The position numbers and the translations under genes were made by a program. This document shows, one piece after another, positions 7,201-58,712 of a DNA stretch of 64,000 nt. The DNA is from Paragordius varius. Lineage: Eukaryota; Animalia; Nematomorpha. Position 1 is the stretch's first letter. Each line of letters begins with the position of its first letter. The stretch lies in contig OZ176052.1 in assembly GCA_964247055.1 (NCBI GenBank), positions 7,998,001 through 8,062,000 of the forward strand. Direction: 5' to 3'. The notes below the pieces were generated by a model that saw only the letters and a program-made list of their open reading frames with translations, was not told the origin of the DNA and searched no databases.

Positions 7201-8466
7201 TTTTAGCTCAAAAATTGGGCGCGTTGGAAATATATATGGGCATTCGTAAATAATTTATTAGATTTCAAACATATGCCTTCAAAAAGAAAAGGAAATTCAA
7301 CAATGTTTCTCTTTCTTGCAATGAGGATGACTTATATATAAACAATTATCTAAGGAATGTGAATTTACCAATTGTGAATATATTTTTGCAAAGTATAGAT
7401 TCCAAATATTTCGGGGGCTGCACAGAAAGTTTGCCCCCCCCCCCCCTGGTTTACATAATAATTTTTTTATGTAAAAAAATTATCAAAAAAATATGCAATA
7501 TAGGAATGGATTTATTAGCGTTAAACATTCACCGAGGCCGTGATCACGGTATCCCAGGGTATAATGCTTTTCGGGAACTTTGTGGGCTTAAAAAGTTTGA
7601 GACTTGGGACGATATGAAAGATGCTATCCCGTTTGATGTGGTTGACAAAATGTCCAAAATATATGAGTAAAATATTTAATATTTTATAAGTGGTATTTTA
7701 AATGTGTAAGGATAATGAGCCTGCCATCCGTATTTCAAAAAACTATTTTACAATATTAATATACCATTTCTGTAGTCAATATAAAAAATTTAGAGACCAT
7801 TTATCTGGTTTATGCCGTGATTGTTAAATATTATATGAATATGATATTTTCAAAGTTAGGCTTTTAGAATTTGGATTTCGAAAAAAATTATCCTCAAAAA
7901 ATTAACTTTGATAAATCATTCTCCTTTATTAACATAGATCCGTGGATGATGTGGATTTATTCCCAGGAGGAATATCAGAATATCATGCAGAAGGCGCCGA
8001 AATCGGTCCAACTTTTGCTTGCATTATGGGTGACCAATTTTTTAGACTAAGGTTTGGGGACAGGTTTTGGTACGAAAATGAAAATCGTACAAATGTAATA
8101 GAACATGCATTTACACCAGGTATAATGACAAAAGTTTTTTTAAGTCCTAATTTGTAACCCATATCATAATTTTTTATATAATTTTAAAGCACAATTGCAA
8201 GAAATACGTAAAACAAGCATGGCAAAAGTATTATGCCAAAACTCTGATGGTATTTCAATCATACAACGAGACTTGTTTCATTTACCGAATTTCAAGTATT
8301 GTAAATTTTAATATAAAAAGATATTAATATGTGTTGACTATTTATTTATGCAATTAAACATATTAATTATCGATATTTTATGTTTAGTAACCCTTTATTG
8401 CCATGCAAAGAATTGCCAGACATTAACCTATCAGCATGGATAGATCGTAAGCAATACAAATATTAA
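524..8466 (+). CDS. Animal heme peroxidase (peroxidasin/peroxinectin-like), multi-exon, 5' part outside the window
   Basis: Spliced exons give [11 protein letters not shown] (distal His), [26 protein letters not shown]...[18 protein letters not shown] (proximal His), [27 protein letters not shown] and [10 protein letters not shown]. Stop TAA at 8464-8466. About 10 GT-AG introns, the smallest 69 nt. Confidence 0.93.
2186..2810. mobile_element. Non-autonomous hAT-type MITE (625 bp) in a peroxidase intron
   Basis: Termini TAGGGTTG...CAACCCTA; 8-bp flanks GCAGTAGC/TCAGTAGC (7/8 match); subterminal arrays of GGTCA/TGACC motifs at both ends. Confidence 0.8.
4239..4292. repeat. (AT)n microsatellite
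   Basis: Uninterrupted AT run; it explains the spurious MIYIYIY ORF. Confidence 0.95.
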
Positions 8467-8802: not shown

Positions 8803-11800
8803 TTAAACATAATCGACAAATTGGATTTCACTCAAAAGCAATATGGAATAAGGCAAGGGCCGGGGTTGTGGTGAAAGTACAGTTATAGTTTCTCTGTCAA
8901 GATTAACATCGGTTCTAAGAGATGATAAATACAAAAAATTGGATAAAAATATTTGTCCGAAATTTTTTATTATAAAAAAAATTGAAATTATAAAGAGAGA
9001 AAAACGTAAAAAACAAATATTTATTATCAAAAATCTACAACCATATTTCTAAACCTTGATATTTTTTTATCGTTTTGACTTATAAAATAGAGAGAGATGT
9101 AGAATGGTATATCGCTTTCTTTATATTAAATTGTATTTATAGGGTGTATGTAGAAATAATTAAGGTATAGAATGTCCGTTTTTATATAAAAAATATTTGT
9201 CTCTTGCTCTATATTTTGTCTGTGCAATTGAGAAAAAAACAACGGAAAAATTTTTTGTCAATAAATAATTTTTAGATAACCAACAAAGTTTTCTCTTACA
9301 TGCAAACGAAACCGGCGATATTCGATTTGAGTATATCTTCTTCGGAATCCGTGGCAGACATACTCAGGGAAGCTAAGTGATGTTTGAGATCTTGAGCTAA
9401 AAATTAGAATTATAAAGACGAATGTAAAAACTAAAAGACAAATATTTTTTTGAGAAACCTATCGTAAGTTAAAATAATACAGAGACGATTAATTGGTAAT
9501 CCACTCAAATTGTAATCTTTTAAGTTATATAGAAATAATAGATATGGTTTAAAAAGGGTGTTTTAGTTTTTAATTAATTTTAATTTTTACTAGACATGTT
9601 AACAAAAAAAGTTATGTAAACCAAAAGTATGGCATTTACTAATTGCCTGGGGCGTAAAATTAAATTTGGTAAGAAAATATTTTACTTAATGGCACGGATA
9701 AAACTGAAAGTGTTTGGTCTTTCATTTTTGTCCCAATAGGGAGACATGAGTCAGGAAGAATTTCATCTTGACGATTGCCCAATCGAAACAGCTTTATTTC
9801 ATTAAATTTGATTTCAAAGGAATGTGGATAAAATCTAAATTAAGTTATGACGAAAAATATATATATATATGTTAAATAATATTTATAAAATCCAATTAAT
9901 TATTATTTACACATTATCTTTTGCCATAATAATTAATCTTTATAATTAGGGTTTTAAAAAAATAAATAATCTGCAACCTATGTTAAAATAGAGTTTTTAA
10001 CCAATCAAAACATAATATCATAACCGTTCAAAAATTCAATCATTTATTACCAAAAATGAATAGCTGTAACTTTAAAAACAACTTCCAAATTTCTCATATT
10101 TTTTATCATTGTTTTATATCACGTAAAAAATTTTAGTTTCACGAACCCTTATAATTAAAGTGTCGCACTTTTTTCCTAACTACATATAAATCCATTCAAA
10201 ATCGGCACACATCATACCTCAAACAATAAATTACATGAAAAAGGAAATAACCTTTTTTCCATGTTTGTTTCATCATTCAAGAGATTAGTAAAACTTTTGG
10301 GTAGTTGAGATAAAGGGTCTGAATCGTCGCGTTTGATTGCATTTGCAGTAGTGAGAGAGGAGGAATGAAAGGAATGGCCATAAAAATATTCACAGACGCG
10401 TTTATCTCGACACGTACTTCGATAAGCTTTACTACGGCTTACCACCTATCAAAAATATTAAAAAAAGGAAAAAAAAATTGAATAATTGTATTTTATTTTA
10501 ACTAATTTAATGAAAAAATTATATTACACATATAGAAAATAATTGTGTGAGTGTTTAATATTTTTCTTATTAACGATTGCCTAGTTGAGTGATATATTAT
10601 TAATCTTGACGGTTAAAATATGGCCAAATCATTTTAAGATAATAAGGATTGAATTATATATAAAATAGTATATTCTCCATTATAATTTGGACAAAATGAC
10701 ATTTAATTAAAATAAATTTTCCAAACAAGATCCTTAGTTATTTATAGTATAATTTTGTAAAGAAAAACAGTAAATTTAAAATCATTTGGAAAAAAGTAAA
10801 AAAAATAGTTTAGTACCCCTCCAGATTTGGGTAGCAACACTACCTTAACAAAAGGTGGTAAATCTCGTTTCAATTCAGTGTACAGCCTTTCCTGATCCAG
10901 TACTATTACGATATCCACTAAATTAAAAATTAATAAAATTCTATGAATTTTAAATTTTAAAATTTAAAAGCAAATATAGACAAACTAACCTTCAAAAGCT
11001 TGAGCTGCATGAGTCAAGGAGAGATAACCTTGTTGTTTTACCCATCCACAAGTATTTATGATGACACCGCTTTGATTGACTATAATAGTCAAAAACAAAA
11101 GTTTAATTTATATTACCCTTAAAACCACAAAGTTGTAAAATGTTATGATGCAATAACAAATATTTAGTATTTGACCAATCATTGAAAATGATAAGTGATG
11201 ATTTTCGCATTAGTGTATATTAAAATCAAATATATTTTTGAAACCAATAAAAAACTATATATGTTTAATGGCTACTTTTAGGTTTTTCCGTACACTTTTT
11301 ATCAATGATTTCAGCCAAGTGTGTAATAGATTGTCTATACAAATTAATATTGTCACCGGGTGAATTGCGTCCATAATGGATGACCATTGGCGCAGCGATG
11401 TTTGAATATAAATTCCAACATTCTTGACTTTCTATAGTTTTTTCTACTTGAATGGCACCTTTCAAAAATGTATAAATGGGTTATGCGAAAGACAATCCCA
11501 AAATAATATTTTAACAGAAACATGATGTAATAAATTACTGATTGTGCCAGGGATTGATACTGAACCCTATAATATAAAAAATTTATAAATTTTCACTTTA
11601 AAATATTTTATATTGAGAGAACTAACTTGTCCAACATCTAAATCCACGAATATGGGCTTCCAACCCATACGAACAGCATAGTTAAGAAGTATAAGGGATA
11701 AAGTAGTTTTCCCCACATCGCTAGGTCCAACAATCATAATCTATAAAAAATGTTTTTTATGATAGTAGTTCCCCTAACTTTTGTTAATTGATACCCATTT

Positions 11801-12502
11801 ATGATGCACTTTCCCAATTTTAAAATGTTCTAGTTTTAAAAAAATTACCATTTTTATTTTTTAATATCTAATATTATATAAATACTATATTATAATAATA
11901 TGACATGGAGGCTAAATTATATTCATATTATTTATTAAAAAGTGATGCGAATAATGAGCCATAACCCCTATAATCGGAATAATTTCAAGATTCAAGATAT
12001 ACTGCTAGTTAAAATTAATTTTCCCACAATCGGAATAATTTCAAGGTTGAGGGTGCAGGTTAAAAAAGTAAATAAATTTTTTTTATAATAAACTTGTATA
12101 TAAATACCCTTGGTCCTCTGGAAAGATTATCACGGGCACCACGACGCATACGTTCAAGAACGGCATGAGTGTTCACATAACATATCATAGGAGTTTCTTG
12201 TGATACATAAGCTATATCATCCAGATTAACTAAATCGGTTGGATCAATCAAGTTTTCAACCTTCAACACAAGCGATGCCCCATGCCAGGAATATATGGAA
12301 AATTTCGATCCTGGGTATATAATGATAGGTTTTTCAACTACAAGTTCATTACCAAATATTTCTGCAGTCCCAGATTTTAGCTTATATTAATAAAGAAAAA
12401 ATATACCTCAACTATACCAATATAATTGTCATCCAACTCAATTCTGAGTTCAGATTCGGGGTCAATTTTGTAATTTTTTTCATTTTTCGTATTTACACTC
12501 AT
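8803..12502 (-). CDS. CLP1: Polyribonucleotide 5'-hydroxyl-kinase Clp1
   Basis: [22 protein letters not shown]..., AEIFGNEL, P-loop [50 protein letters not shown], and C-terminal [11 protein letters not shown]...IQFVDYV*. First intron is 26 nt (12381-12406). Confidence 0.93.
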
Positions 12503-12604: not shown

Positions 12605-15600
12605 ATGAAAAAGGAAGATGCTCTGTGTTTTAAAATTAACAATGGTTAAATTTCTTTATAATCTCATTTAAGATTGTTTGGTAGCTAGTAAGGGGAAGCC
12701 TCAAGCACATCAAATTTTCGAAATTTTATTACAATTGAAAAGATTAAACTTGGATAGGGAAGAAAATCCAACATCCCGTTCTGATGCATTTAATATTTTT
12801 AATAAGTGGATATCAGGCAATGTCGATTTAACTAAAATTAATGTTCATCGATCCTCTTTTGGAATGGGAGTTTTTGCAGCTAAAGATATACAAGTATTTT
12901 ATATAACATCTCATTGAAGATGAATGAAATAATTACGTCTCTACCACCAAAATATGCGCTAAAAGTTTCATCATCCCCTTTTTTAAGTTTATTATAATTT
13001 TTAACCAATTTTTTTAGGTGAAGCATTTAAATATGATAATAGTGTAAAAAAGAATAGTTTAAATCTTTGCCTGCTTTTGTTGTATGAAAAGTTTTGTAAT
13101 GAACACTCATCAGATTGGAAACAATACATTGGTATTTTTTATGGCTTTATAAATTACATCAATCAGATATTTTACCATCGGAGTTTACGACACCCTTGTA
13201 TTTTGACGATCATAATTTGGAACAAGCAACTGATTTGATATCTTTCCAATTGATATGTAAACATATTATAATTATGGCACAACAGTTTCTATATATCAAG
13301 GGATATCTAACCAATGTAAGTATTTATATAAAACGATTGATTTCGGAGTTAATGTATTTTAGATTTTTTAATGTATATGCTTTTGTGGGTTGATTTAATT
13401 ATATTTTAACCTTTGACTTTATAGGTTGTCGCATAAATTTATTTTTTAAAAAAATATTTTGGTAAAAATTTATACGCTTTAAAAAATACCAATTTTGAAT
13501 TTTACTGATATTTTTAATGGTCGATATTTGCTTTAATCGCCAACAGAAAATTTTATTCATTTTCAAAAACTTTTGTAGTATAATTTAATTACATTATAAT
13601 AATGTGATGAAAACTCTAATATATAATAATACTTATTATGTTTACTCATTATAATCGCAACTAAAGGCTTTTACTATACAATTGAGTTAAACAAAAACAT
13701 TGAATTTTAATAAATTGGTTATTGTGATGAAAACTTTTAATTTTTTAGTAGGCGTCTTGTTTAAAGTTTATTTTTATCTGTTTTGCAAAATGAACATTCT
13801 TCAATTTAATATTTTTTTTGTTACAGAAATATAATCCAATAAAAATAAAAATGGCAAATGTAAAAAAAATTATATTGATTACTCCTATTTAACGTTTGCG
13901 TTACAATTTAATTAAAAATAACTCAATGATTTTAAAAGCCTTTATATATATTCTGTGTTCAAAAAACAAATTTTTTTTTAAATGAGAAAGTTATGACCAG
14001 CGTATTCATTTTCCGTAAAATTATTTATTTTTTACGACCTAGTTTTTGAAATATTGAGTGAAAATCGAAATCGGGCAAAAAGTGAAAATTAAGAATAATT
14101 CAAAAAAAATGATAAAAGTTGAGATATTATGGTTGATTATCATTCCAAGAGATATTTTCTATAGATAAATAGCCTAAAATCATATAAATATGATTTCTAT
14201 AAAATCTCAGTTTAAAAGATGGCGTTTTTCTTTTAACCAAAAGTCCAAAAAAAATTTATAAAATTTATTATAATTTTTTTTAATTATTTACTAACTAAAT
14301 TCCCTAATACAATCTTAACATATATATTTTGTTCGGTAAAAAAACTTCTATATCAAAAGAAAACTAAAATATATTGTTTTTTTTTTCATTTTTTAGTCAT
14401 CTGGTTTATGAGTGTATAAAAAATTTATCTGTTTTATTTGGAATTTTACATAAGTGGGATAAATATAATTTATGCAAAATATGATTTAAAAGTAGTGGAA
14501 AATCAACCAAATATCCGTACATATCCCAGTAAAAATATTAATTTGTGTCAAAACAAACCATACAGGGATTTGTACGGATTGTTGGTTGATATTCCATTAT
14601 TTTAAATTCTATTTTGCATAAATTATATATTTATAACTCTTACTCATGTAATATACCAAAATAAAACAGTATAAATTTTTCATAACATGAACCATATGAC
14701 AAAAAAAATGAAAAAATAAAACAATTATAGAAGTTTTTGAACTAAATATGAATGTTAAGATTTTAATAGTGAGTTTAGCTAGTAAATAATTAAAAAAATT
14801 ATTTTAATATAGTTTCATAAAATCTTTGTTGACTTTTAAATCTGTAAAAGAAAAACGCCAACTTTTGAACTGATATTTTATAGTAACCCTAATATGATTT
14901 TGGGCTATTTATATATAGAAAATATCTCCTAAAATGATAATCAACCATAATATCTCAACTTTTATCATTATATTTGGAATTATCCTTATTTATCCTTAAT
15001 TTTCACTTTTTGCCCGATTTCGATTTTCTCTTGATATTTCAAAAACTAGGTAGTCAACAAATAAAATTTTTTGGTTAAAAAATTAACCCTCTTTTTTGCA
15101 CACAGTATATATATATATATATATATTATTATATATATATATTATTATTATTATATATATATATATATATATATATCAAGGTATTGAAAAAGGACGCTAA
15201 ACTAAAAAAGCTGATTAAGAATTTTACTTGGCACAATTTTAGGTATATCTTTAACATTATTTTTATATTATAATTTTTACTCCGAAAAAATAATTAAAGA
15301 TTTCAAAGTATTTGTTAATAATTTAAATAATAAAAAGTTTTATAGTTGGTTTATCCCTGCTTTTTAGATGGGCAGTCTCGTGTTTAAGCACACGTCAAAA
15401 TTTAATTATTTTGAAAGACAAAACATCACACATTGAAACTAATGATTTGAATGAATCAACTCAAAGCAAAGATATAAGTCATGAATTAGCATTAATCCCT
15501 ATTCTCGATATGTTTAATCATGATGGAAATGTCCCCATGTCAATTGATCAAGACCCCATGACTGGAAATATATTGATTTATGCCCCTAAGAGTTATAAGA

Positions 15601-18600
15601 AAGGAGATGAGGTTTTTATATCACAGAAAACTTTATTTAATTATATCATTTGCACTTAAACCTTAAACACTCAAGTTCTTTGAACACTTTAAGTTGGTGT
15701 GTAAACAATTTGGTTCTTGAAGATTTCAAGTTGCTTATTGAGCACTTTTATTGGGGCTATCACTTCAAGTTAGTCCTTGAACACTTCATGTTCGTCCTTC
15801 AACGCTTCATATTTGTTTTAATGTCAATCAAACCGTGTATCCTTTATATATATTTTATCATTTTCAACGTATGCTCTTGATTAAATAAACTCTTAAATTA
15901 ATATCAACTTTTAACCATTCATAAACTGTATATCTCTATTGAGTTGTTAAATAATGTTATATAAGATTTTATGTAATCCAAAAAATATAATCTGGATTAA
16001 TAACAATTTGTTAAAAACATTCATAATTTAATGTTGTTGTTGAGCTTGTAGTCAGTTATCGATTAACGATTTTATAGGAAAACTTACTCCACTCGGTTCT
16101 GTCGTGGGCTTTTTTAGATAGTGTTTGCAGTGACATTTTGGAAAGTGATAAGATGTCTTCGATCTAGCAAATACGTCTTCGTCCTCTTCCTCTCTTATCA
16201 TTTACTTTTCCTAACATAATATCCTTTTCCAAACAATGTCCTTGAATAATGTGTCCAAAATAACCGTTCTTTTACCCCGAAACACTGTTTATGCGTTAAT
16301 TTTATTTACGATGTCGATATTCTTTATTTTGTCCTTACATGTTATACAAAGTATTTTTCTCCAGCAAAACATTTCAAAAGCGTTTATTCTTTTTTCATCT
16401 TCACTTTTAATAGTCCAGATTTCACATCCGTATGATAGGAAATATTAATGCGTTTATTAGTCGGATTATTGTTTTCCATATCTTGTATGAGGCTAGAGCG
16501 CATTTGGCGATAGCTATGTGTCTTCTTATTTCTTGGGAACTGGAGCTTGAGTTGTAGATAATGCCTTCTATGTGTATTCGTTGACTACTTGAATTTTTTC
16601 GTTATAAATCCGAAGCGAGTCATATGAATGAGGGGAGTTGATATGCAATATTTTAGTTTTGTTGAGGTTTATGTTAGATTGTATTTTTATAAAAGTTCGG
16701 AAACTGTTTTCAAGGTTTGTTTGTGAATTCGCTAAGATTACTATATCGTCTGCTTAGTGGAGAGTCGTCAGTGTGTGACCCCCCACTTTTATTCCTGGCA
16801 GATTTAGATCCCTCATGATACATTCTAAATATACGTTGAACAAATGGGGGATAAAATGCAGCCTTGACGCAGACCTATGTTCATTGGACTCCTAGAGGTC
16901 GGACCATGCGAGGAATGATAGGTAGGAGTTGGAGTATATGGATTTAATTATTTTGATTAAGGGATCGGAAACTCCTATTTGTTTAAGGACCTTTCAGAGA
17001 ATGTCATGTTGAACGGTAAGGCTTTAGAGGAATCCACGAAGCATAGGTGTAGCTCATTTTGGGATTCACACTTTTTTTCCATTATCCATCTACTGTTTGA
17101 GATATGTCTCGGCTGCCTGTGTCATTGAGATTTCCGGGTTGGCATATGTTTGTAGAATTTTTAAAAACACTTTTGAGGTTTGATTGATTAATGCTATTGA
17201 GCCGTAGTTTTCACATAATTTAGGATCGCCCATTATGAATATCGGGATCACTAGTGATTTGTTCTAGTCCGCCGGGAACGTTGCCTCGCTGAAGATTTTT
17301 TGGAATAATAAATGAATTAATTTTATGGGAATGTCCCTTTGTAGCTCTGTGGAGATGTCATTAAATCCTTCTGCTTTGCCGGTTGATGAGTGTCTCACGG
17401 CCCATTCAATTTCTTCTTTTAGTATCGGTGGGTCATTAGTTTGTTCAAGGTTCATAGCGAATATTTGATTGTTTTGTGAATAAATTTTGCATGTATTCTT
17501 TCCAAAGTTTATTTAGTTCTTTCTTATCGGTTAGAAGTTTTCCGTTTGGGTGAGGTACATTTTTTTTGCCCGGTTGAATGTCTTTAATATAAGAGAAATA
17601 GTTGTGATTGTTTATCAGATCGCTGTAGGTTAGCGCAGATTGTATTATAATAAGATTCTTTGTAGCATCTAATGCTTTTTTTGTAGTGCATTATTAATAT
17701 TTTTGTACTCAAGGGGAGTGTCCTTGGATTTTGCTATTTTTCTCTGTTCAATTAAGTCGATGCTTTGTTGTGATATGGTAAATATTTTGTTTTTAGTTGG
17801 GGCAGGCGGTACATTTTTTTGGCTGTTTCGGTGGTAATTTTGTGGATAGTTGACCGAAGGTCATCAGTATTCAATGTTTCGTAATTTAAGGATTCGAATT
17901 TATTGTTAAGGATTGGAGTGAAATCGGCAGGTATAAGTTAATAATATTTTTTAATTGAAAAAAATTAGTTCGAAACAAAAAAGTGTTATTTAAATGAAAA
18001 TATTAATTTTACATGAAAAAAATATATAGCAAATCAAAAAAATTAGATTAAAAAATAATAACTTGAAAGAACAAACTTGTGTTGAAGAACCATAAAGTGT
18101 TAAAGCACACTCTTGAAGTGTAAATGGTATATTTATAAATTTGTATAATAGGACGCTTAAATTTATTGTTTGAATATAAAAACTGCATTTTTACTTCTAA
18201 ACATCAATATTTTGTGAAAAAAATGTAACCTACTTTTTTGTTTAGCCATTTAACCTATTTTATATAATAATTACTTATGAAAAATTTGATAGATTTTCAT
18301 AAATTATGGTAAGAACAGATCTTCATCAGAATTTTTAATACACAATGGTTTCGTTCCTGATCATGTCGACAATGATTACATTCTCATTCCATTTGGTATG
18401 TTGTTTAGTGCGTATAAAATTTATACCCTATAATAATCTGCTTTATTTTAATCTCTGTAATAGGTTTGAATAAAAATGATCCCTTTTTAACACAAAAACT
18501 TGCTTTGATTCAAAAAATACTGAACGATAATGAAAACCTCAAACACAATCATCAAAATTTATGGAAAATTAAATTGAGTAGTACGGATCCATTGATAACA

Positions 18601-18957
18601 TGGGAAGATTTTAGTATCCTAAGAGCTATTTGCCTTGCGCCTGGTAAAATATTTATATAATTTAACTAAAAATTACTCTATCCAGGTTTATAATATAAAA
18701 TTTCGCTGATTTTAAACCTTTTTTAAAATAAATAATGTCAATAAATATAATTTTAATAAAAAACATTTTATCATTTTTACATAGACATCTTTTCTCAATT
18801 GAGTGTCGAACAATTAGCTAAACAATTTGCCCAAGATGATTTAAATGGTGAAAATTCATCCATACTAAACAAAAATGTTTCTAAAACTTATGCTTTTTTA
18901 AAAGGGCGATGTCAAATATATCTGAAAAAACATAAAATTGCTATGGAAAAGGTATGA
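12605..18957 (+). CDS. SET-domain methyltransferase, SETD3-like (actin-histidine N-methyltransferase / Rubisco-LSMT family)
   Basis: FGMGVFAAKDI, WKQYIDILPSEFTTPLYF, RWAVSCLSTRQN, ALIPILDMFNH, YKKGDE|IFINYG..RSSSEFLIHNGF. Short introns of 28, 26, 31 and 35 nt in the 5' part. The 3' end (18957) is uncertain because AAG|GTATGA could be a splice donor. Confidence 0.8.
13951..15107. mobile_element. Fold-back (whole-length palindromic) MITE, ~1.16 kb, in a SETD3-like intron
   Basis: Ends TTCTGTGTTCAAAAAA / TTTTTTGCACACAGTA in TA-rich flanks. Arms pair along their length, e.g. GAAAATCGAAATCGGGCAAAAAGTGAAAATTAAG against CTTAATTTTCACTTTTTGCCCGATTTCGATTTTC. Centre near 14530. Confidence 0.8.
15960..17930 (-). 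mobile_element. Degenerate non-LTR retrotransposon (RTE-like LINE) in a SETD3-like intron
   Basis: Minus-strand RT remnants: PILKEEIEWAV...GKAEG, NYGSIALINQTSK, CLRQGCILSPHLFNVYL, ADDIVILANS. Many stops and frameshifts; boundaries approximate. Confidence 0.78.
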
Positions 18958-19633
18958 AACATAGTTTTTAAACATGAGTTTTTTGGCCTTAAATTTGGTT
19001 TTTATCCATATTACATTTTGATATTCATAGGGTTACCACCCTCTCTTATCAAGCCTCTTTTGTTTAAAACCACCCCTTAATTTTAATAATTGTTATATAT
19101 TTTTATATTGTTTACGGGGGAAAAATAGTTTGCTAATTGTAAAGAAAAATGCGGTGAAATCGATATTATGATTGATAAATTGTATAGACATGAATCTCGC
19201 ATTCTTCAACGTGCCATTGATGCTTTGTCTACCAAGATGTGATTTTCTCATTTATACACACCTAATAATTTATTTGTGCCAAATTTATATTGCAAAAAAT
19301 TTTATAATTTTATGTTTTATACCGTTTTTTAGAATCTTAAATTCTGACTATAAATGTTTTTCTATAAATATTAAAGCAATTTATATACTTGTGTGCAAAA
19401 AATTATATTAAAATAAAAATTAATCACAATTGTTTCAGTCATATGCAGTTTTATTTATATTACGGTGCGTATATCCAGGAAAGTAGTTTAGAAAAATGGT
19501 TAAAAATTTCAAATTTTTGTAATACATTTCCATATGCTAAATAAAATTAATACAAAGATTTTTTTCACATCCTCATGCCGATTGAAAATACAAGATTTTT
19601 GATAAATAAGCTACTTTAGTATTTATGGTATAA

Positions 19634-22600
19634 TTAGTAGCTTATGTTTATTTTCCAATCTGTTCGTAAATCTGGTATTGGTTTTTTGATTTCTATACTC
19701 CTGTCCGTATCCCGATATTTGAAGTATAATGGAATGGCTTTAGTATCTAACAAAAATATATTTGCAAAAGAATTTAGGAATATTTCAAAAGTTATGTTTA
19801 TCAAATATTTTAGATAATATTACTAGGACTAGTGGTTAATAAAATATTTTTTGGACGTTTTGGTAACCCACGTATATAAATGCGCTCAACTTCAGTTTCG
19901 GCCTTATCATCAAGATTCATGTGGATAATTCTTTAAAAAATATATAACATTTTATTTAGAATAAAATTGATCCATTTCATAATTAGGTAGAAAATAAAAA
20001 TAACTAACCTTGCTGAAAGGGTATTTTTGGCATAATACAAATGAGCATAAAAATATTTTCCCTTGTGATACTCATAACTTATGCCGTCATCTATATACAG
20101 AGTCCCAAAAGCTTCTCCCTAAAATAAGAATTCAAATGAATAATTTAAGTGCGCCATGTCAAAAAATATTTTGATTCAATTTTATTATATCAGAGATCGG
20201 AACCATTTAAAACGTTTAAAAAAATGAGAAAAAATGTTGCTATCAATCCTATGGTTTTTTGGTCAAATTTGTTTATAGATAGCTTAATTAATTTTGTAGT
20301 GAAAAAATTGTCAGTATACATATAAACACCAATAATATGCGCTACTTTTATATTTCAAATACAACAATAAAGAAAAAATAAAATTGTTATTTTGTTAGTC
20401 TATTTCATCGATTACACTGTGCAACAAATTTTATCCTTTTCTTTTGGACCAGAGTGAAAATTACGACATCTTATAGAGAATTTTTTTCTGAAAATAATGA
20501 TATATTTAATATTTTCTTAGCTCTTTTTCGCGAGCCGCTAAAAGGTTTTAAAAATCAAAATACCATCAAAAATGCCTGTTTTTGTAACCCTATAACTTTT
20601 TGAATTATATAGCTTATTATATTTTTTTGGAAGGATATTACAAATTATATATTAAAATTCATGTAACATTTTAAAATTTTTAAAAGTCTCTATTACTTTT
20701 TGATTTATTTGGAAAAAACGAAACTTAGCTCCAAAAAAATAGCGTTTCAAAACAATGAAAAATTAAGAGACATACTAACATCATCTTTTCATTATACATT
20801 ACAAAAATAATAAAATTTAATTGCTTTTTTATAAATATGAAAAATAATATATATATTTAATGGTATAATAATAAATTTAATATTATAATGGTAATATTTT
20901 TAAATTTATTAATGTAATGGATAATAAACTTTGTGTTTGAATTAATATTATATGATTTTTAGTAATATTTCAATTATGTTATTATATATTTTTATTATTA
21001 ATTTTAATTCTAAACTACTAAGGTTTTAAAAAATTTAAAACAGAAATGATTTCAAAATTATAAATATTTATTAAAATATTTTTAAATAAGACACAATATA
21101 CGAATATATTTATTATGAAAATTGATACTTGTTACATATTAATTGCATATATCAAATTTAAATTGTGTTTAACCATATTAAATGCATAAAAATATTATGA
21201 AAATTGATAAATGTTACATATTAATTGCATCAATATATCATATTTTATTACATGTTAAATAAAATAAATGCATTAATTTATAAATTTGTATCAGATATTA
21301 TATCATTATATATTATACAAATATGAAAATTATTTTAAAAAGAAACATTTTTTGTAATTTTTTAGTTTATGATCTATATGAGGAACGCGATAAAGTGTCC
21401 AAATATAATCCGCCAACATCGCCGTATCACATTTCCCGTGATATCTATCTTCCATAGCTAAAATCTCCTGATGAAAGCGCTCCCCCTGTTCATCACTAAA
21501 TGCCCCTAAGTTATCTGGAAAATACTCCAGATGAGCATGAAGGAAGTGAATTTTAAGAGACATGCGCACTCTAAACTCCAGAAAACATTTCATCATTTCG
21601 GCCACACCATCCTTGTAACACGGGCATTTGACATTTCCTTAAAAAGTGATGTTCAATATATTATTATTTTTTTGATGAATTAGATATAACAAAAATTACC
21701 TAAGAAATTTCGGCAAAACCATATACAGATTTCCAAGTTCTCAATTTTATATCACCCAAAAGTGACATAAACTTATCATCATTAAATATTTTCCTTATCT
21801 GAGGGCCGAAAAAAATACCCTCTTTAATCTTAGAGTCCGATATCTTGGGAAATATCTGACTAAGATATTGAAATCCGCGAGTGTCTAATTTCGCCATTGC
21901 TTTGACCAGATTTTTTACTAATCCAAGCTTTATATGTAACGGCGGAAGTAATATATTTTTTGTATCTAACAGAGGAATTCGGCCTATGCTAAAATTACCT
22001 GGAGCATAATCATTACGCATAGGAAAGATTTTTTGGTAATGATTTTTTGTATCCCTGCTATCCCAGCAACAGAGAAAACGACAAAATTTAACAAAACCAA
22101 AATTAAGACCTGTTAGAATTGCGGTTACTTTTAAATCCGCACAAATTTGCCACTGAAACTTTGGATATTGTAACAACGTCAAAAATTTCGATAAAGTAGT
22201 TTTCCTTTTTGCAACGAGCATATGCAACAGGGATACTCGGTAGGCTGTTGTTATTATCCAAAAGGACGGCTTTAAAACTTGTTTTGGATGAATCCAAAAA
22301 CAAACGCCATTCTTTGGGTTCCATTGGATATTGCAGGAAATTGAACATTCCCTCAATGTCCTGACAAAAAGTCATACCATCTTCTTCATTAAAATATTTC
22401 GTAAGATGGTCACTGCGCGCCCTCTATAGGTTGTGCGCACACCAAAATCCAATGCATCATATTCCGCAAGTCGAGAACCTTTAAATATAAAATACTATAC
22501 CAAGGACATCAGCGTTTCGTTTGGATAAATTTAAATCCTTAACCAAATTATTCAATGCATTTTGATTCATTTTTCGTTTTACTATTAGACGGGAAGTGGT

Positions 22601-25600
22601 GGATAAGGTTTCAACGTCGTCAGAAATTATATCAGTGTTTTCTTCCTGCCCGCTAAAAAATCAAAATAAGCGTACTTTAAACGTCTTATTTACTGTTACT
22701 AGTATTTTATATTTAAAGGTTCTCGACTTGCGGAATATGATGCATTGGATTTTGGTGTGCGCACAACCTATAGAGGGCGCAGTGACCATCTTACGAAATA
22801 TTTTAATGAAGAAGATGGTATGACTTTTTGTCAGGACATTGAGGGAATGTTCAATTTCCTGCAATATCCAATGGAACCCAAAGAATGGCGTTTGTTTTTG
22901 GATTCATCCAAAACAAGTTTTAAAGCCGTCCTTTTGGATAATAACAACAGCCTACCGAGTATCCCTGTTGCATATGCTCGTTGCAAAAAGGAAAACTACT
23001 TTATCGAAATTTTTGACGTTGTTACAATATCCAAAGTTTCAGTGGCAAATTTGTGCGGATTTAAAAGTAACCGCAATTCTAACAGGTCTTAATTTTGGTT
23101 TTGTTAAATTTTGTCGTTTTCTCTGTTGCTGGGATAGCAGGGATACAAAAAATCATTACCAAAAAATCTTTCCTATGCGTAATGATTATGCTCCAGGTAA
23201 TTTTAGCATAGGCCGAATTCCTCTGTTAGATACAAAAAATATATTACTTCCGCCGTTACATATAAAGCTTGGATTAGTAAAAAATCTGGTCAAAGCAATG
23301 GCGAAATTAGACACTCGCGGATTTCAATATCTTAGTCAGATATTTCCCAAGATATCGGACTCTAAGATTAAAGAGGGTATTTTTTTCGGCCCTCAGATAA
23401 GGAAAATATTTAATGATGATAAGTTTATGTCACTTTTGGGTGATATAAAATTGAGAACTTGGAAATCTGTAATATGGTTTTGCCGAAATTTCTTAGGTAA
23501 TTTTTGTTATATCTAATTCATTAAAAAAATAATAATATATTGAACATCACTTTTTAAGGAAATGTCAAATCCCCGTGTTACAAGGATGGTGTGGCCGAAA
23601 TGATGAAATGTTTTCTGGAGTTTAGAGTGCGCATGTCTCTTAAAATTCACTTCCTTCATGCTCATCTGGAGTATTTTCCAGATAACTTAGGGGCATTTAG
23701 TGATGAACAGGGGGAGCGCTTCCATCAGGAGATTTTAGCTATGGAAGATAGATATCACGGGAAATGTGATACGGCGATGTTGGCAGATTATATTTGGACA
23801 CTTTATCGCGTTCCTGATATAGATCATAAACTAAAAAATTACAAAAAATGTTTCTTTTTAAAATATTTTTCATATTTGTATAATATATTAATGCATTTAT
23901 TTTATTTAACATGTAATAAAATATGATATATTGATGCAATTCATATGTAACATTTATCAATTTTCGTAATAAATGTTTTAATGCATTTAATATGGTTAAA
24001 CACAATTTAAATTTGATATATGCAATTAATATGTAACAAGTATCAATTTTCATAATAAATATATTCGTATATTGTGTCTTATTTAAAAATATTTTAATAA
24101 ATATTTATAATTTTGAAATCATTTCGTTTTAAATTTTTTAAAACCTTAGTAATTTAGAATAAATAAATATTTACTTTAAAATTAATAACAATATATAATA
24201 ACATAATTGAAATATTACTAAAAATCATATAATATTAATTCAAACACAGAGTTTATTATCCATTAACATTAATAAATTTAAAAATATTACCATTTTAATA
24301 TTAAATTTATTATTATACCATTAAATATATATACTATTTTTCATATTTATAAAAAAGCAATTAAATTTTATTATTTTAGTAATGTATAATGAAAAGATGA
24401 TGCCAATATATCTCTTAATTTTTCATTGTTTTGAAACGCTATTTTTTTGGAGCTAAGTTTCGTTTTTTCCAAATAAATCAAAAAGTAGTAGAGATTTTTA
24501 AAAATTTTAAAATGTTACATGAATTTTAATATATAATTTGTAATATCCTTCCAAAAAAATATAATAAGCTCTATAATTCAAAAAGTTATAGGGTTACAAA
24601 AACAGGCATTTTTGATGGTATTTGGATTTTTAAAACCTTTTAGCGGCTCGCGAAAAAGAGCTAAGAAAATATTAAATATATCATTATTTTCCGAAAAAAA
24701 TTCCCTATAAGATGTCGTAATTTTCACTCTGGTCTAAAAATCGTGTTGCACAGTGTTATTATAAAATGCGTCCCAAAAAAAGCTGATTACCGTTCCATTT
24801 ATTTGTAATTATAAAATAGATATAAAAAGATAATTCCTGTTTCTAACAAAACTAAGTACCTGAGAATCTAGTGCGATATAAAGAGTAAAAGGGTTATCTT
24901 TTTGCCACATTATAGTTGCACTCCGGCGTTGTCGAAGCTTTCTGGGTATAATAGAGCCCCCACGTTGATATACCATTATCTAGAATCATATATATAGACA
25001 TAAATGTTATATTCTTTGGGCAAAAACGGATAAAACTTAGTAGGTATATTATATTAAAGAATATCATACATAAATGTATGTTAATATCAATGAGTCAATT
25101 TTCCAAAAAAATTTTTTTTTATAGAAAATGACTCAAAAATATATGATATAAAACTAAATTTACATATTGTATGCAACTAATTAGTTATCTAGCATTTTCT
25201 TTATAATAATGATTGAATTTCACTACACACTGTGTATATAATAATAGAAATATTAAATTTTATATAACAGGGGTGGCCACACTTTTTTTGTCGCGAGCTT
25301 TTTTTTGGCTTTTTTGTTAAAAAAAGAGTTCGCCGTCACCCAGAAATATTTATCAAAAAAACTCAATCAACACTTTAAATGATGTATATACCTGCTTTAC
25401 AGATTAGAGTGACTTGTTTAAACCATTTTAAAATTGTAATTTTTTTATCTATCAACCAAATACAAAAATAATTTTAATTAAAAGACAACGGGTTATTAAC
25501 TACCTTAATTTTTTAACCAACATAAAACACTTCAAAATATTTATTTATTAAATTTCTATTATATGAAATTTTACAATATAAAAATTTAAACAATGCATTT

Positions 25601-28600
25601 GAAATTACAGGGGAGAATACATTATGATAGAAAAAATAAAAGAAATAAAAAATAGCATTCTAATTTAGAACCATAATTTGAACATAAATAAGAGTACATT
25701 AAAATTGTATCAGTTTTAATTCTATCCACATATTTTTTAGTAAATCGGCTTTTTCCTAAGCGAAAATACAACTCGATAAACATCCATATTTAATAAAGAA
25801 AAAAATATTTAAAACGCCCGACTGCGAAAAAATTCAGAAAGTTTATCTAAATTAGGTTCAAATGAAGTCAAAGCATTTCTCAAACATGATTCTAAATGTT
25901 TATTAGTTAGTGACCTCTGTTTAGTTTTGATAGCATTCATAATTGAAAAAGCCGATTCACATAAATATGTGGATCCAAAAAAAGAATTGAATAATGCAGC
26001 GGTTTTCCAAATATGGGGGTATTTATCTTTATTTATAAATTTATATATATCTGATCCTAATGATTTTAGATGGATATCGCATTTAACATTTATTAATTCC
26101 TCTTCCAACTCTGCTAAATTTGGTACACCAAGAAAGTGGCTAATGGGCATGATAAAAAAATAGCGATGTCTTTAAGTTTATTTATAGATGAAAATCGTTT
26201 TTCAAAATCATCAATAACACTAGACAACAAATTTTAACTTTTTTTAACTGCCATTCTTGTAAATTTAAAATTTATTTCATTAAAGTACATAATTAGTATA
26301 TCTGAAAAGAAAATTGGTCTAGCATGGAAGAATTTTTTTATATCAGAGTTTATCGATAATTTTTGGCCCCGATTTAACATTAAACTCGAAATTTCGAAAA
26401 TTAAAAGTTTTAGATATGAAGCCAAGTATTTTTATCATTCGAAAGAGCGCAAAAAACTGCATCTTTTAATTGGTAATAAGTCATTTAAATCAATCGAATG
26501 TAAAAGTTATTTGGATTTAAATGGTCGAAATTTTCAATTCTTAAATAAGTCAAGAATTTTCACAGACAAACTAATTTGAAAATCATATAAATTATTTTAA
26601 TATAATTATTAGGGTTATATTAGTATTTAATTTAAAAAAAATGTTTGAAAAAGCTTTTGGTTTGCTTTTTTAATAAAAATTATTATTATCATAATTATTT
26701 TACCTAGTGGATACTAAAATGCATAGTTATAACTGTAAATTTATTACATAATGGCTATAAAAGATCAAAAAGACCTTAAACTTTGTTTTTATCTTTAAAA
26801 TTTCGAAATTATCAGCCTCGTAAAGAAAATAAATTAATATTGATGAGATGGTAATTTTTAAAAAACCAAAAAACCTAAAAATGGCTGTTTTGAGTGACAT
26901 AAAAGCAATAAAAAATGTTTTAATCAAAAAACACTTACTTGTGTTATCTTTTTTGGACATTCATCACCATCTAAACAAAGTTTGAGCTATTTTCATCCAT
27001 TAGTTTTAAAAATATAATAATTATAAATGTTCTCGCTTCGCGCGTTTGTCGCTCTTTGTGTCCAATATTAACTGTCGATGTAATACATAATAGTATGCAT
27101 TTTTTAAAGTGTTTATTACTCTTTCGAATGATATATTACAAATGGGCATTACTTGTATATTTTCAAAGAAAAACATTTATTAGTAAAATTTTGATAAAGA
27201 GGGCGCATAATCAAAAAAATTAAATGATACAAAATTCTTCCAACAAGTTATAATTTTTATTTTAGATTTACTGTTAAAATGATACTAAATATCAGAAAAT
27301 GCAAAAACTCGAGTGGCAGAAAAATTTGTTGTCCAGTGTAAGCAGACCAATATCATCTGCATATTTTTCAAAAGAGAGATTCTCTATTTTTTCAGACACC
27401 GCTGCCAGATTAAAAAAATGTTTTAAATCTCGGTTTTTTAATTGTGTTTCTACTACTGTTAGTGTTTCCTTAAAAGATTTTAAAGCACCCATCATATCCA
27501 TTATTGTTTTATCTTTTCCTTGTAATTGGATGTTTAATTTATGCAATTTTTCCGTGATATCGCATAAAAATGCAAGATCAAGCAGCCAATCTTGATCTTT
27601 CAATTCAGGGTATGAAAATTTAGAATTCTCTAAAAAAAATTCTATTTGTGGTAAAAGTTGCCTAAATCTAATTAAAAATGCGGCACGACTCAACCACCTT
27701 ACATCAGTATGTAATAAAAGTTCTCCATATTCCACGCCACACTCATTTAACAAAATTCGAAATTGGCGGCGGGACAAGCTTTTTGTTCGAATGGCGTTAA
27801 CAATTTTAAAACAGGGGTTCATTACATGATGGTATTTTAAAACTTTTGAACATAAAACTTGATTATGGATTATACAATGGTAATCAATGAACTTGGGAAA
27901 TGCACTGTGATTTTTACATAAAGCGATAAAGCCGTTGTTAACGCCAATCATAGCTGGAGCTCCATCAGTAGTTATAGATGCGAGTTTTACGATGGAAAGT
28001 TTCGTATCTGTGATAAATTTATAAAAAGAATCAAAAATACCCTGCCCTCTGGTTCGTTCGTGGAGAGGTATTATAGTTAATAATTCCTCCTTTGCAGATA
28101 AATCACTAAATATCATACGAATATAAATGCATAATTGGGCGATTCCAACATAATCGGTGGACTCATCGAGTTGCAAGGAAAAAAAATACAGTTATTTATA
28201 TTTTCATGTAAAATTTCATCAAGATTATTACTAATATCTTCAGCCCTGCGCATAACGGTATTTCTCGATAAGCTTATGCTTTTAATAGCTGTCATAATAT
28301 TATTTTTGTTATCAAAATTTTCAAATAAAATATCACAAGCGCTAATAAAGGCTTCTTTAAATATTTCACCATCTTGGAATGGCTTATTGTTCCGAATGAG
28401 TATTTCCACTACCTTGAATGAAGCAATCGTAGCATTTTTATAGTCTTTGTTGTATTTAAGTATGCTATTTTGTGAGGCGGATAATTGTTCTTTTAATTCC
28501 TTTACTTTAATGTTGCGTTCTTGAGTTTGTAAGGGGTAGTTCTTGGAGTAATGTGGATGCAGAGATCTATAATGTCTTTCAATATTTGACTTTTTGGGCA

Positions 28601-31600
28601 AAGCAACAGTACTATTGCATATTAGACAGGTGCATGTTTCATTTATCATAATAAAAAAGTATTCATGCTCCCAATCTTTCTTGTATCTGTACAACTTTTT
28701 ATGGCTCATTCTAAAATATAAGTTTTAAAAACCTACTTTTGGTGTATCAAATCAAATCTAACTTCACGATTATGCTTCTGATTTATGAATAAGCTTTGCT
28801 CAAAGTTTTGATATATTCAAGGGAAATGACTGATTTTAAGATTCCTTGCAACTCGATGAGTCCACCGATTATGTTGGAATCGCCCAATTGTGCATTTTTA
28901 TTCGTATGATATTTAGTGATTTATCTGCAAAGGAGGAATTATTAACTATAATACCTCTCCACGAACGAACCAGAGGGCAGGATATTTTTGATTCTTTTTA
29001 TAAATTTATCACAGATACGAAACTTCCCATCGTAAAACTCGCATCTATAACTACTGATGGAGCTCCAGCTATGATTGGCGTTAACAACGGCTTTATCGCT
29101 TTATGTAAAAATCACAGTGCATTTTCCAAGTTCATTGATTACCATTGTATAATCCATAATCAAGTTTTATGTTTAAAAGTTTTAAAATACCATCATGTAA
29201 TGAACCCCTGTTTTAAAATTGTTAACGCCATTCGAACAAAAAGCTTGTCCCGCCGCCAATTTCGAATTTTGTTAAATGAGTGCGGCGTGGAATATGGAGA
29301 ACTTTTATTACATACTGATGTAAGGTGGTTGAGTCGTGCCGCATTTTTAATTAGATTTAGGCAACTTTTACCACAAATAGAAATTTTTTTAGAGAATTCT
29401 AAATTTTCATACCCTGAATTGAAAGATCAAGATTGGCTGCTTGATCTTGCATTTTTATGCGATATCACGGAAAAATTGCATAAATTAAACATCCAATTAC
29501 AAGGAAAAGATAAAACAATAATGGATATGATGGGTGCTTTAAAATCTTTTAAGGAAACACTAACAGTAGTAGAAACACAATTAAAAAACCGAGATTTACA
29601 ACATTTTTTTAATCTGGCAGCGGTGTCTGAAAAAATAGAGAATCTCTCTTTTGAAAAATATGCAGATGATATTGGTCTGCTTATTAATGATTTTGAAAAA
29701 CGATTTTCATCTATAAATAAACTTGAAGACATCGCTATTTTTTTATCATGCCCATTTAATAATAATAATAATGTTGAATATATTGCTCAAAAACTCAGCC
29801 ACTTTCTTGGTGTACCAAATTTAGCAGAGTTGAAAGAGGAATTAATAAATGTTAAATGCGATATCCATCTAAAATCATTAGGATCAGATATATATAAATT
29901 TATAAATAAAGATAAATACCCCCATATTTGGAAAACCGCTGCATTATTCAATTCTGTTTTTGGATCCACATATTTATGTGAATCGGCTTTTTCAATTATG
30001 AATGCTATCAAAACTAAACAGAGGTCACAATTAACTAATAAACATTTAGAATCATGTTTGAGAATTGCTTTGACTTCATTTGAACCTAATTTAGATAAAC
30101 TTTCTGAATTTTTTCGCAGTCGGGCGTTTTAAATATTTTTTTCTTTATTAAATATGGATGTTTATCGAGTTGTATTTTCGCTTAGGAAAAAGCCGATTTA
30201 CTAAAAAATATGTGGATAGAATTAAAACTGATACAATTTTAATGTACTCTTATTTATGTTCAAATTATGGTTCTAAATTGGAATGCTATTTTTTATTTCT
30301 TTTATTTTTTCTATCATAATGTATTCTCCCCTGTAATTTCAAATGCATTGTTTAAATTTTTATATTGTAAAATTTCATATAATAGAAATTTAATAAATAA
30401 ATATTTTGAAGTGTTTTATGTTGGTTAAAAAATAAAGGTAGTTAATAACCCGTTGTCTTTTAATTAAAATTATTTTTGTATTTGGTTGATAGATAAAAAA
30501 ATTACAATTTTAAAATGGTTTAAACAAGTCACTCTAATCTGTAAAGCAGGTATATACATCATTTAAAGTGTTGATTGAGTTTTGATAAATATTTCTGGGT
30601 GACCGCGAACTCTTTTTTTAACAAAAAGCCAAAAAAAAGCTCGCGACAAAAAAAGTGTGGCCACCCCTGATATATATGATTAAAAATATTAATAATTATA
30701 AAATATCTATAAAATTACCTTAAAAACAAAAAAACAAAAAAGCAGATGATAGATAATAAATTAATAGAAAAGATTATATTATATCATGGGCCTAAAAACG
30801 TTATTTAAATGAAACCGTCAAAAACCAGGTTTTTAACAAAACCAATTAGGTACTACACTCTGTTATCATTATAAGAAAGTTAAAATTCGATAATTATTTG
30901 TAAATTAACTAAAATATTCATTAATATTTAATAATTTTACATTATTTTGTATGGGTATAGGTAAAATTTTAGAATGGTCAGCTTGTACCACGTGATCCGA
31001 ATATGTATCATACCATATCTAAAATAATATAAAATTGGTCCATATGAAAAATATTTATGCTTTAAAAAGAACTACTTTGTTAAATATTAAAACTAAAATT
31101 ACCTCATGAGGTCCTGGAAAGTAGGCATTAACTTGAACGGCACCAGGATCTCCGATTGGGTGTACAAGAAGTGAATCACCTTTATTTTAAAAAAAATGTT
31201 AATCGCATCGCATTCAAAATTAAAAACAGTTTAATACAATATAAAAAAGAAAAATGATTGAATTATTTCAAATATACTGAAAACAATTACAGAAAGTTTA
31301 GAATTAAATAACTCCACATGTAATACAATGAATAATTTAACTTAAAGGGTTAAAACAAGTTTAGTTTATATAAAAAGGTTTTTAAAATAAAAATTTAAAA
31401 GTAAATTAATATATAATATCTAATACCAATCATATATTCACTATCAATAGAAAATGAATCTGTATTATTTGGGAAATTAACCCAAATCGGCCTCATAATT
31501 GGCATCCCTGAATGTTCTGATTCATAAAAAAGTGTATACCTATAATAAAATTATCGAATTAAATACGTAACACAACCAATATGTATTTGTTAAGCATCAA

Positions 31601-42870: not shown

Positions 42871-42958
42871 GCTGATATATTGTGATTTAAAAGTTTTTCA
42901 AAGTTAATTATTTATATTTTTTAAACATAATATACATTTGTTGCCAATTGTATATTAA

Positions 42959-43480
42959 CACTTCGATTCCAATTCGGGTATCTAAATACCTCAGACTATA
43001 TTTAAGTTATTATTTTTTAAAAACTACCAAAGGAAATACCAATTTAAATTATGCTGCTATCCTAATAAATATTATATAAATATGACGAAATATCTAATTA
43101 AAAATTAGTTTTGAAAAAAGTTTTATATCAAACTACTTCGACGCCATTTTTATTCATTTTTGTAATATCGTATTTATTTAATTTTAAAGCAAAATTAAAG
43201 CTATTTCTTTAATATCTAACATTGGTAGAAACAGAAAAGTAGTTTATTTAGTATTATTTTTGAATTTAGCTAATGCATATGTCATGTTGACTAAATTTTT
43301 ACCTTTGAGTTTTACCTTAAAAAAAGTAATATTAAGTATTTTCGAATGATTTTTTTAATATTAGGTTTATAATGTTATAAGTGCAAACTTGCCATGGTTT
43401 CGATTCCTTCCATATTTTTAGAAGTTTTTAATTTTAAACAGGCTTGGGGTATCCAACTACTCCAATTTGAATCGAAGGAC
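42959..43480 (+). mobile_element. ~530-bp MITE, copy 1
   Basis: CACTTCGATTCCAATTCGGGTA...TCCAATTTGAATCGAAGGAC; internally homologous to the copies at 45328 and 58179. Confidence 0.8.
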
Positions 43481-45233: not shown

Positions 45234-45327
45234 TTAAATTTAAAATCACATGGATTTTAGGTTTGTGCTGCAATGCGACAAAAGAAAATATCAATAATTA
45301 ACATTTGGATACAATACACTAATTTTA

Positions 45328-58178: not shown

Positions 58179-58712
58179 CACTTCGATTCAAATAGGGGAT
58201 ATTTAAATTGATATTTATAAAAACTACTGAAAGAAATGGCCCTTATTTAAATTTATGCATTTATCCTAATAAAAAATATATAAATAAGCCAAAATATATA
58301 AATAATATTTAGTTTTGAAAAAAAGTTTCATATCATACTACTTCGCCGCCATTTTTATTATACAACATCTTTGCAAAATATCCTGTTTATTTAATTTTAA
58401 AGCTATAAATCAAGCTAATTTTTTATTTAAATCACATCTAACATTAATATAAACAGAAAAAGTGGTTTATTTTGCATTATATTTTCATTTAGCTAATGGA
58501 CACATGTCATGATGACTAAATTTTAATCTTTGGGTTTTATCTTAAAATAAGTAGTACCAAGTATTTTTGAATAAATTTTTCTTAATATTTCGGTTTATTA
58601 ATGTTTTATAAGTACAAACTTTAGCCATGGTTCCAATTCCTCCTGTATTTTTTAAAGTATTTAGTCTATACAGGCATGGGGCATCTAACTACCCTAATTT
58701 GGATCGAAGGAC
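58179..58712 (+). mobile_element. ~530-bp MITE, copy 3
   Basis: CACTTCGATTCAAATAGGGG...CTAATTTGGATCGAAGGAC; same family as the copies at 42959 and 45328. Confidence 0.78.

Follow-up and report, generated by a model that had tools for sequence, protein, structure and literature searches.

Within a 64-kb stretch of Paragordius varius DNA (contig OZ176052.1, positions 7,998,001 to 8,062,000 of the forward strand; hereafter the window, with positions counted from its first nucleotide), we identified two multi-kilobase palindromes, P1 and P2, in consecutive introns of the gene GANAB. Each is bounded at both outer ends by the 3' terminus of a cut-and-paste DNA transposon, a Chapaev3-type element in P1 and a hAT element in P2. 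Each carries the 3' part of its transposase gene twice, in opposite orientations around a unique spacer. P1 and P2 are real, inactive foldback-type derivatives that probably originated independently when 3' ends were joined by faulty repair, and their adjacency is probably coincidental. A previous reading of the DNA letters (hereafter the sequence-only reading) had described two such double-3'-end palindromes at this position, and its description of the arms, the element lengths and the consecutive introns was borne out.

The host gene was identified on the minus strand, where stop-free segments of GANAB extend from ~38.1 kb down to 19.8 kb. Four segments match solved GANAB structures in the expected order, and the reading frame is continuous over the exons read at splice sites. 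A search with one GANAB exon yielded fragments with at most 78% identity. An exon at 31179 to 31103, delimited by its splice sites, is followed by an 84-nt intron. The next exon (31018 to 30941) fills a gap between structure-aligned residues and lies immediately upstream of a GT-AG intron of 5961 nt (30940 to 24980), of which 5402 nt are the hAT element. An exon of 120 nt (24979 to 24860; IMVYQRGG...IALDSQ), which aligns to residues 454-490 of 7kbj_A, separates P2 from P1. The second GT-AG intron (24859 to 20119) is 4741 nt long, including the 4341 nt of the Chapaev element, and the exon immediately downstream of it (20118 to 20009) was located by a structure match and by its splice sites. The unique spacers of both palindromes are in the GANAB sense orientation, in agreement with the claim that an original arm of each element lies in the direction of the host gene.

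The interval from 19.5 to 31.5 kb of the window was subjected to self-comparison, and the arms were then resolved by gapped alignment. Two nested sets of inverted repeats were detected, with nothing similar in the rest of the interval. The length and identity of these repeats far exceed chance expectation. P1 spans positions 20415-24755 (4341 bp), with the termini CACTGTGCAACA...TGTTGCACAGTG at 20415 and 24755. Measured from the termini, the sizes of P1, with its TTA target duplication, and of P2 (5402 bp) are those given by the sequence-only reading. The aligned arms of P1 (20442-22497 and 22700-24739) are 96.0% identical including gaps over 2075 columns; counting substitutions, the arms of ~2.06 kb are 98.4% identical. 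Aligned from the termini, they differ by 34 mismatches and 8 indel events, and the right end, CACTGTGCAACACGAT, departs from the left end at positions 13-27.

The left arm of P1 (20415 to 22499, minus strand) is the 3' part of the element in the GANAB sense, comprising the transposase from residue ~228 to its end, the 3' non-coding sequence, and the terminus CACTGTGCAACA. It adjoins a unique spacer of ~200 nt (22500 to 22697, minus strand), which encodes transposase residues ~179-226. The right arm (22698 to 24755, plus strand) is an inverted 3' part with residues ~228-578 of a 608-aa relative, the 3' non-coding sequence, and the terminus. In terms of this relative, the minus-strand copy corresponds to residues ~179-578 and the plus-strand arm to ~228-578. 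Approximately 175 N-terminal residues and the entire 5' end are absent from both copies, with the truncation point of the element near 22699/22700, at the junction to the right arm. The transposase gene contains a 22-nt GT-AG intron, read from the sequence at 22479 to 22500 (minus strand); once it is excised, ...NADVLG and SRLAEYDA... are fused in frame. Introns of 21-27 nt agree with lineages compiled in PMC13644364, namely myxobolid myxozoans and Dicyema. The arm's inner edge is located 1-3 nt from the 5' splice site of the 22-nt intron. Since the right arm also retains the 3' part of this intron, the template of the duplication was DNA and not spliced RNA. A 2-nt insertion (22415-22416) and a 1-nt deletion (21723) are frameshifts private to the left arm. 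Another frame change, near an A-run at ~22985-23013, is common to both arms and could be either a genuine change or a homopolymer error.

Chapaev3 elements are characterized by 5'-CAC...GTG-3' termini and a 3-bp TWA target duplication between A and T (PMC4079192). Both hallmarks were observed in P1, which has CAC...GTG ends with CACTGTGCAACA at either end and the target context A-TTA-[element]-TTA-T. The left TTA (20412 to 20414) is preceded by A and the right TTA (24756 to 24758) is followed by T, as in the A-TWA...TWA-T rule (PMC4079192). The P1 translation also shows LH (PPLHIKLG) and H(4)H (HFLHAH) motifs, and the cysteine pair, C(2)C in Chapaev3 transposases, reads CRFLCC. A 230-aa piece of the translation has >1000 homologues at E<1e-10, typically 560-620 aa long, in which the piece falls at approximately residues 290-460. 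No informative family name was found among these homologues (none, "hypothetical" or "uncharacterized"), and a match to a Pfam transposase family was absent. Since the homologues provide neither, it is by the termini, the duplication, and the motifs that P1 is assigned to Chapaev3 (CMC superfamily).

P2 spans positions 25268-30669 (5402 bp). Its terminal sequence, CAGGGGTGGCCACAC, occurs exactly twice in the window, at 25268 and 30669. In the gapped alignment, 25261-28180 pairs with 28842-30676 in three collinear blocks with 97-99% identity. The arms are ~1.8 kb long and 99% identical, with 17 mismatches and 5 indel events when aligned from the termini. The left arm (25268 to 28180, minus strand) is the 3' part in the GANAB sense and includes the transposase from residue ~185 to the C-terminus, the 3' non-coding sequence, and the terminus CAGGGGTGGCCACAC; it is broken by a secondary transposon and a 40-nt deletion. 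The unique spacer of 661 nt (28181 to 28841, minus strand) encodes the hAT N-terminus, residues 1 to ~184, with a Spin-doc zinc finger. Its ATG is at 28709, with a leader of only 132 nt upstream. On the minus strand, a 1-nt shift in a T-run is found exactly at the arm edge, followed by the catalytic and C-terminal parts and the 3' end. The right arm (28842 to 30669, plus strand) is the inverted copy of the 3' part. It begins abruptly at the SLQLDESTD codon (residue ~185), runs unbroken to the 3' terminus, and holds an unbroken 428-aa frame (28846-30132) equivalent to residues 186-611 of a 617-aa relative. The sequence-only reading had proposed that both spacers hold only N-terminal transposase sequence. 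This is the case for P2 (residues 1 to ~184 and the 132-nt leader) but not for P1, whose spacer (residues ~179-226) is not the true N-terminus.

The 8-bp sequences flanking P2, TTATATAA on the left (25260 to 25267) and ATATATAT on the right (30670-30677), agree at 6 of 8 positions and differ at positions 1 and 8; being AT-only, they are weakly informative. They might be read, although weakly, as a TTATATAT duplication with both element-proximal bases complemented, as in a classic hAT excision footprint. An extension of the duplication into the flanks (25237-25267 and 30670-30700) was considered and rejected, the inverted similarity being ~71% and AT-only compared with 99% in the arms. Since this similarity is far below that of the arms, the flanking DNA is not part of the duplication.

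The family of P2 was deduced from its protein domains and termini. The hAT dimerisation domain PF05699 was detected in the 428-aa frame (E 4.4e-05, above the cut-off), and the Spin-doc zinc finger in the N-terminal frame. These frames align to residues 186-611 and 12-182, respectively, of a 617-aa GTF2IRD2/FAM200-like hAT transposase with 62-66% identity, and a protein with FAM200/ZBED5 RNase-like domains shares 66% identity with the 428-aa frame over 426 residues. The terminus CAGGGGTGGCCACAC has the hAT YAGNG start at both ends; the corresponding sequences in a relative, L001, are CAGGGGTGGCCAA and CAGGGATGGCCAA. P2 is accordingly classified, by domains and termini, as a hAT element of the GTF2IRD2/FAM200-like group. 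L001 (ENA ERZ1034367), a hAT element of ~3.1 kb, is flanked by a TATATA-type 8-bp duplication and has terminal repeats of 14-25 nt and a 5' region of 690 nt. Its 5' terminus is CAGGGGTGGCCAACAAG and its 3' terminus CAGGGATGGCCAAACTTTT, and both ends of P2 look like the 3' terminus. The closest hAT relatives, with 64-66% protein identity, are L001 and L002-L007 (Logan SRR318646xx), all with a low G+C content of 0.30-0.35. Named hAT relatives are scattered among beetles, fishes, frogs, and one bryozoan, a patchiness typical of horizontally moving hAT families.

We then considered whether palindromes of this kind are the normal architecture of the two families. Autonomous foldback-like families do exist, for example Galileo (PMC4168063), and both families might naturally carry terminal inverted repeats of ~2 kb. 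However, a complete transposase is encoded by neither palindrome, P1 being without ~175 N-terminal residues and the second copy in P2 starting at residue 186. In the protein collection, the best relatives showed 66% identity for the hAT element and ~50% for the Chapaev element. Terminal repeats are short and of the ordinary type in relatives at 50-66% protein identity. A large internal inverted repeat was absent from both L001 and the Chapaev-type relative L008, a contig of at least 3.65 kb with one 608-aa gene. These comparisons support the claim that P1 and P2 are rearranged, and make a family-wide architecture of this type scarcely credible.

Fold-back chimeric long reads, or inverted chimeras formed during whole-genome amplification, could also give rise to apparent palindromes; inverted chimeras arise on amplification, which sometimes precedes the sequencing of tiny parasitic animals. 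However, the ends of P1 and P2 are exact transposon termini with target duplications, within an otherwise collinear and intact gene. The arms differ by 1-1.6% substitutions and by multi-base indels of 11, 13, 32, and 40 nt, and only one of them contains an entire secondary transposon, itself flanked by a duplication. Chimeric reads would produce arms that are identical and lie at random positions, and arms with separate histories therefore exclude this origin. The sequence-only reading had named assembly fold-back as the result that would overturn the structure; these arm-specific differences speak against it, and we consider an assembly or library artefact very unlikely.

The secondary transposon is a 1121-nt non-autonomous Chapaev-type element located in the left hAT arm only (26218 to 27338). 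It has the termini CACTAGACAACAAATTTT and CACTGGACAACAAATTTT with 18-nt terminal repeats, and a TAA duplication at 26215-26217 and 27339-27341. The right arm keeps the empty site, ...ATTAATAAGCAGACC, at the corresponding position. A relationship to P1 as a deletion derivative was examined and rejected, since the likeness is confined to the terminal 18 nt. Because only these ends are shared, the insert indicates activity of a second Chapaev-type family at a time when the hAT palindrome already existed.

The distribution of differences between arms was also analyzed. In P1, the outer 916 nt contain 28 substitutions and the adjoining 395 nt another 6, with the inner 774 nt free of them; the mismatch rates are 3.1%, 1.5%, and 0%, respectively. 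At a uniform rate, ~12.6 substitutions would be expected in the inner block (Poisson probability of observing none, ~3e-6). The divergence of the P2 arms is even at ~1%, without a gradient. The arm mutation spectrum showed no bias, with transitions and transversions numbering 16 and 18, and 9 and 7. Both palindromes decay as neutral DNA does, with frameshifts, the 40-nt deletion, and the 1.1-kb insertion. As judged from their reading frames, neither can encode a working transposase, because one arm of each is N-terminally truncated and the other is truncated or interrupted.

P1 and P2 share one geometry, in which two copies of one 3' end face outward with their termini and the arms are unequal. 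From this geometry, we infer a repair mechanism and an order of events. Each palindrome would have resulted from the head-to-head joining of two copies of one 3' end that had broken internally at different points; the longer copy would have supplied the spacer, and both outer ends would have become 3' termini. The cause would be error-prone repair of a transposition-associated break or of a collapsed replication fork. During gap filling, the repair strand may have switched onto the 3' end in inverted orientation; template switching is documented in the gap filling of terminal-inverted-repeat transposons of animals (PMC7467729, PMC10766183, PMC8277862). Alternatively, re-replication may have been aborted and two sister copies of the 3' end then fused. 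The Ac killer composites p1-ww-id1 and p1-ww-id4 of maize have been explained in this manner, by aborted re-replication of a transposon end and fusion of the broken sister copies (bioRxiv 10.1101/2020.01.07.897926, PMC13635294). A product of this kind is also described for Galileo, whose terminal repeats have taken up the 3' end of the transposase frame (PMC4168063).

Two routes to the present location can be envisaged. In route (a), the palindrome would have formed in place: the gap left by excision would be refilled from the sister copy, the end meant to copy the 5' side would re-anneal to the near-identical 3' terminal repeat and copy the 3' arm in reverse, and the two nascent ends would then be joined without homology. 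In route (b), the palindrome would have arisen elsewhere and inserted here via its two identical termini. Both routes fit the intact target duplications. The mismatches in the hAT flanks and the difference at positions 13-27 of the P1 right end lean weakly to route (a), and trivial alternatives exist for both. At the inner junctions, at most 1-2 nt of microhomology can be read from the palindromes themselves.

Local self-insertion and internal deletion are common in hAT and CMC elements, and a nested, double-Ds-like origin would lead to the same product, with unequal arms and a junction without homology. In this case, the first copy would have received a second, inverted copy in its 5' region; a later deletion within the element would have taken out the 5' half of the second copy and part of the leader of the first, and the resulting 3'-bounded unit would have moved to GANAB. 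If two different copies were involved, this could account for the 3% difference in the outer P1 arms. However, three separate events would be needed in each of two families. Neither inner junction (28841/28842 or 22699/22700) was found to carry a 5' terminal repeat, and no internal 8-bp or 3-bp duplication is present there. Moreover, the identical inner 774 nt of P1 are hard to fit to diverged copies, unless conversion followed. We therefore regard nested self-insertion as unlikely and favor the direct joining of two 3' ends by faulty repair.

Some observations weigh against this preferred explanation. The gradient in P1 is not explained by one duplication followed by neutral decay, and needs either arm-to-arm conversion or a second event; gene conversion between the arms close to the centre is possible and would be the simplest idea. 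The canonical structure of the two families was judged from relatives in other organisms, and no copy of either family from the same genome was retrieved. In addition, maize Ac needs one 5' end and one 3' end, so that mobilisation of a hAT element with two 3' ends is not a given.

Foldback and inverted-duplication derivatives of DNA transposons are already known as a kind, and P1 and P2 add to them. Ac killer is likewise derived from a hAT element, with two fractured copies of one end inverted, termini outward, and joined at internal breaks. Its arms are unequal (1.8-3.9 kb) and are transcribed from the promoter of a flanking gene into double-stranded RNA (PMC13635294). By contrast, the maize arms are 5' ends and lie inside chromosomal inverted duplications of 0.3-3.2 Mb produced by sister-chromatid transposition, whereas the arms of P1 and P2 are 3' ends flanked by normal collinear intron and a target duplication. 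Small RNAs and trans-silencing were demonstrated in maize, whereas P1 and P2 are known from sequence alone. In Mu killer, part of a transposase gene is present as an inverted duplication, for which read-through from a flanking gene into a hairpin RNA of ~4 kb has been proposed (PMC3440606). It differs in belonging to the Mutator superfamily of a plant and in including the mudrA 5' part together with the 5' terminal repeat, and its silencing was shown genetically.

The Galileo/Foldback-like elements of Drosophila resemble P1 and P2 in that their terminal repeats grow by internal duplication and recruit the last piece of the transposase frame, and in the secondary insertions found in one repeat (PMC4168063). 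However, Galileo is a member of the P superfamily, its repeats reach ~1.2 kb, and nearly complete copies retain the whole transposase gene, whereas ~70% of the gene lies within the repeat of P1 and P2 and a complete gene is absent. Fold-back inversion and template switching also produce inverted duplications with a short unique centre, via hairpin priming or a switch between leading and lagging strands (PMC7467729, PMC10766183, PMC8277862). Those events are chromosomal or capture foreign DNA, whereas P1 and P2 are bounded exactly by transposon termini. In Drosophila, endo-siRNA loci of the hpRNA type are genomic inverted repeats that give long hairpins diced into small RNAs in an animal. The hpRNA loci known so far are directed mostly against protein-coding genes and do not consist of intronic, double-ended transposon palindromes.

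An inverted duplication of part of the transposase gene, the Mu killer/Ac killer criterion, is found in both P1 and P2. The sequence-only reading had cited these maize loci as precedents and predicted ~2-kb stems over the catalytic regions in a sense transcript. The precedents are real, although they differ in detail (PMC3440606, PMC13635294), and the predicted fold agrees with the stems. In the folded sense transcript, 2022 arm-to-arm pairs were predicted for P1 and 1786 for P2, and the longest perfect helices reached 692 and 226 bp, respectively. As a fair structural prediction, the GANAB pre-mRNA would thus form double-stranded stems of ~2 kb if the introns are transcribed intact. Dicing of these stems into small RNAs may follow, which we infer as a by-product and not as a demonstrated function.

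It is conceivable that the palindromes are retained because constitutive transcription of GANAB yields double-stranded RNA, and from it small RNAs that silence Chapaev3 and hAT elements in trans. Both lie in introns of a housekeeping gene on the transcribed strand, the long predicted stems (~2022 and 1786 pairs) span the catalytic and C-terminal coding parts, and Mu killer and Ac killer are documented maize precedents. However, the location in GANAB needs no selective explanation, and the arms are decaying as neutral DNA would, through frameshifts and, in one arm, through the loss of 40 nt and the gain of a 1.1-kb insert. Retention as a silencer is therefore doubtful, and in the preferred explanation both elements are inactive passengers of the GANAB introns.

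The occurrence of one rearrangement in two superfamilies only ~500 bp apart had been taken to suggest a recurrent host-level process or selection. This argument is weakened by three further foldback repeats in the window alone, at 50045-51209, 52148-53228, and 14017-15070, with arms of ~480-570 nt and centres of 32-91 nt. These indicate that palindromic repeats are common even within this window. The adjacency of P1 and P2 is probably a coincidence and says nothing special on GANAB. Of the proposed recurrent host-level process or selection, a recurrent, superfamily-independent process making such palindromes is plausible, whereas selection at the host level is not required.

The rest of the window was annotated as follows. 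The foldbacks at 50045-51209 and 52148-53228 are 1 kb apart and 74-83% alike. A family of ~530-nt repeats with 78-79% identity occurs at 42952-43486, 45323-45884, and 58199-58735, and the ARL2 gene (44593-45233) is flanked by two of its copies in inverted orientation. The minus strand of 16200-17950 is richer in G+C (0.35), with a strong base skew and reverse-transcriptase-like pieces (…ADDIVILA…), and is probably a LINE fragment. Neighbouring host genes at 7359-7670, 11570-12386, and 12672-19000 include an animal haem peroxidase exon and CLP1 on the minus strand (N-terminal domain, E 4e-20). A SET-domain match on the plus strand was weak and sub-threshold (E 0.0027; 18.6 bits against a 22.4-bit cut-off). 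An Rfam search of the window gave no match.

How a host first recognizes an active DNA transposon is still debated, and the triggers with the best documentation are inverted duplications that arose by accident, such as Mu killer and Ac killer of maize. The GANAB locus adds two clean and well-bounded examples, one with a dated secondary insertion, and by itself does not show a function. More speculatively, a general, superfamily-independent route may turn cut-and-paste transposons into double-3'-end palindromes in the genome of this animal, with those in introns of expressed genes acting as a distributed, constitutively transcribed source of hairpin RNA that checks DNA transposons; we consider this improbable. 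If true, such a source would correspond, across an entire animal genome, to the "killer" loci of maize. The route could stem from a peculiar hairpin or break repair, or from re-replication. Long hairpins, by drawing splice sites together, might also be better tolerated in introns in a lineage used to very short introns. An animal genome with several transposon superfamilies present as multi-kilobase intronic palindromes would be a test bed for asking whether such structures are the trigger in animals, and which repair pathway makes them.

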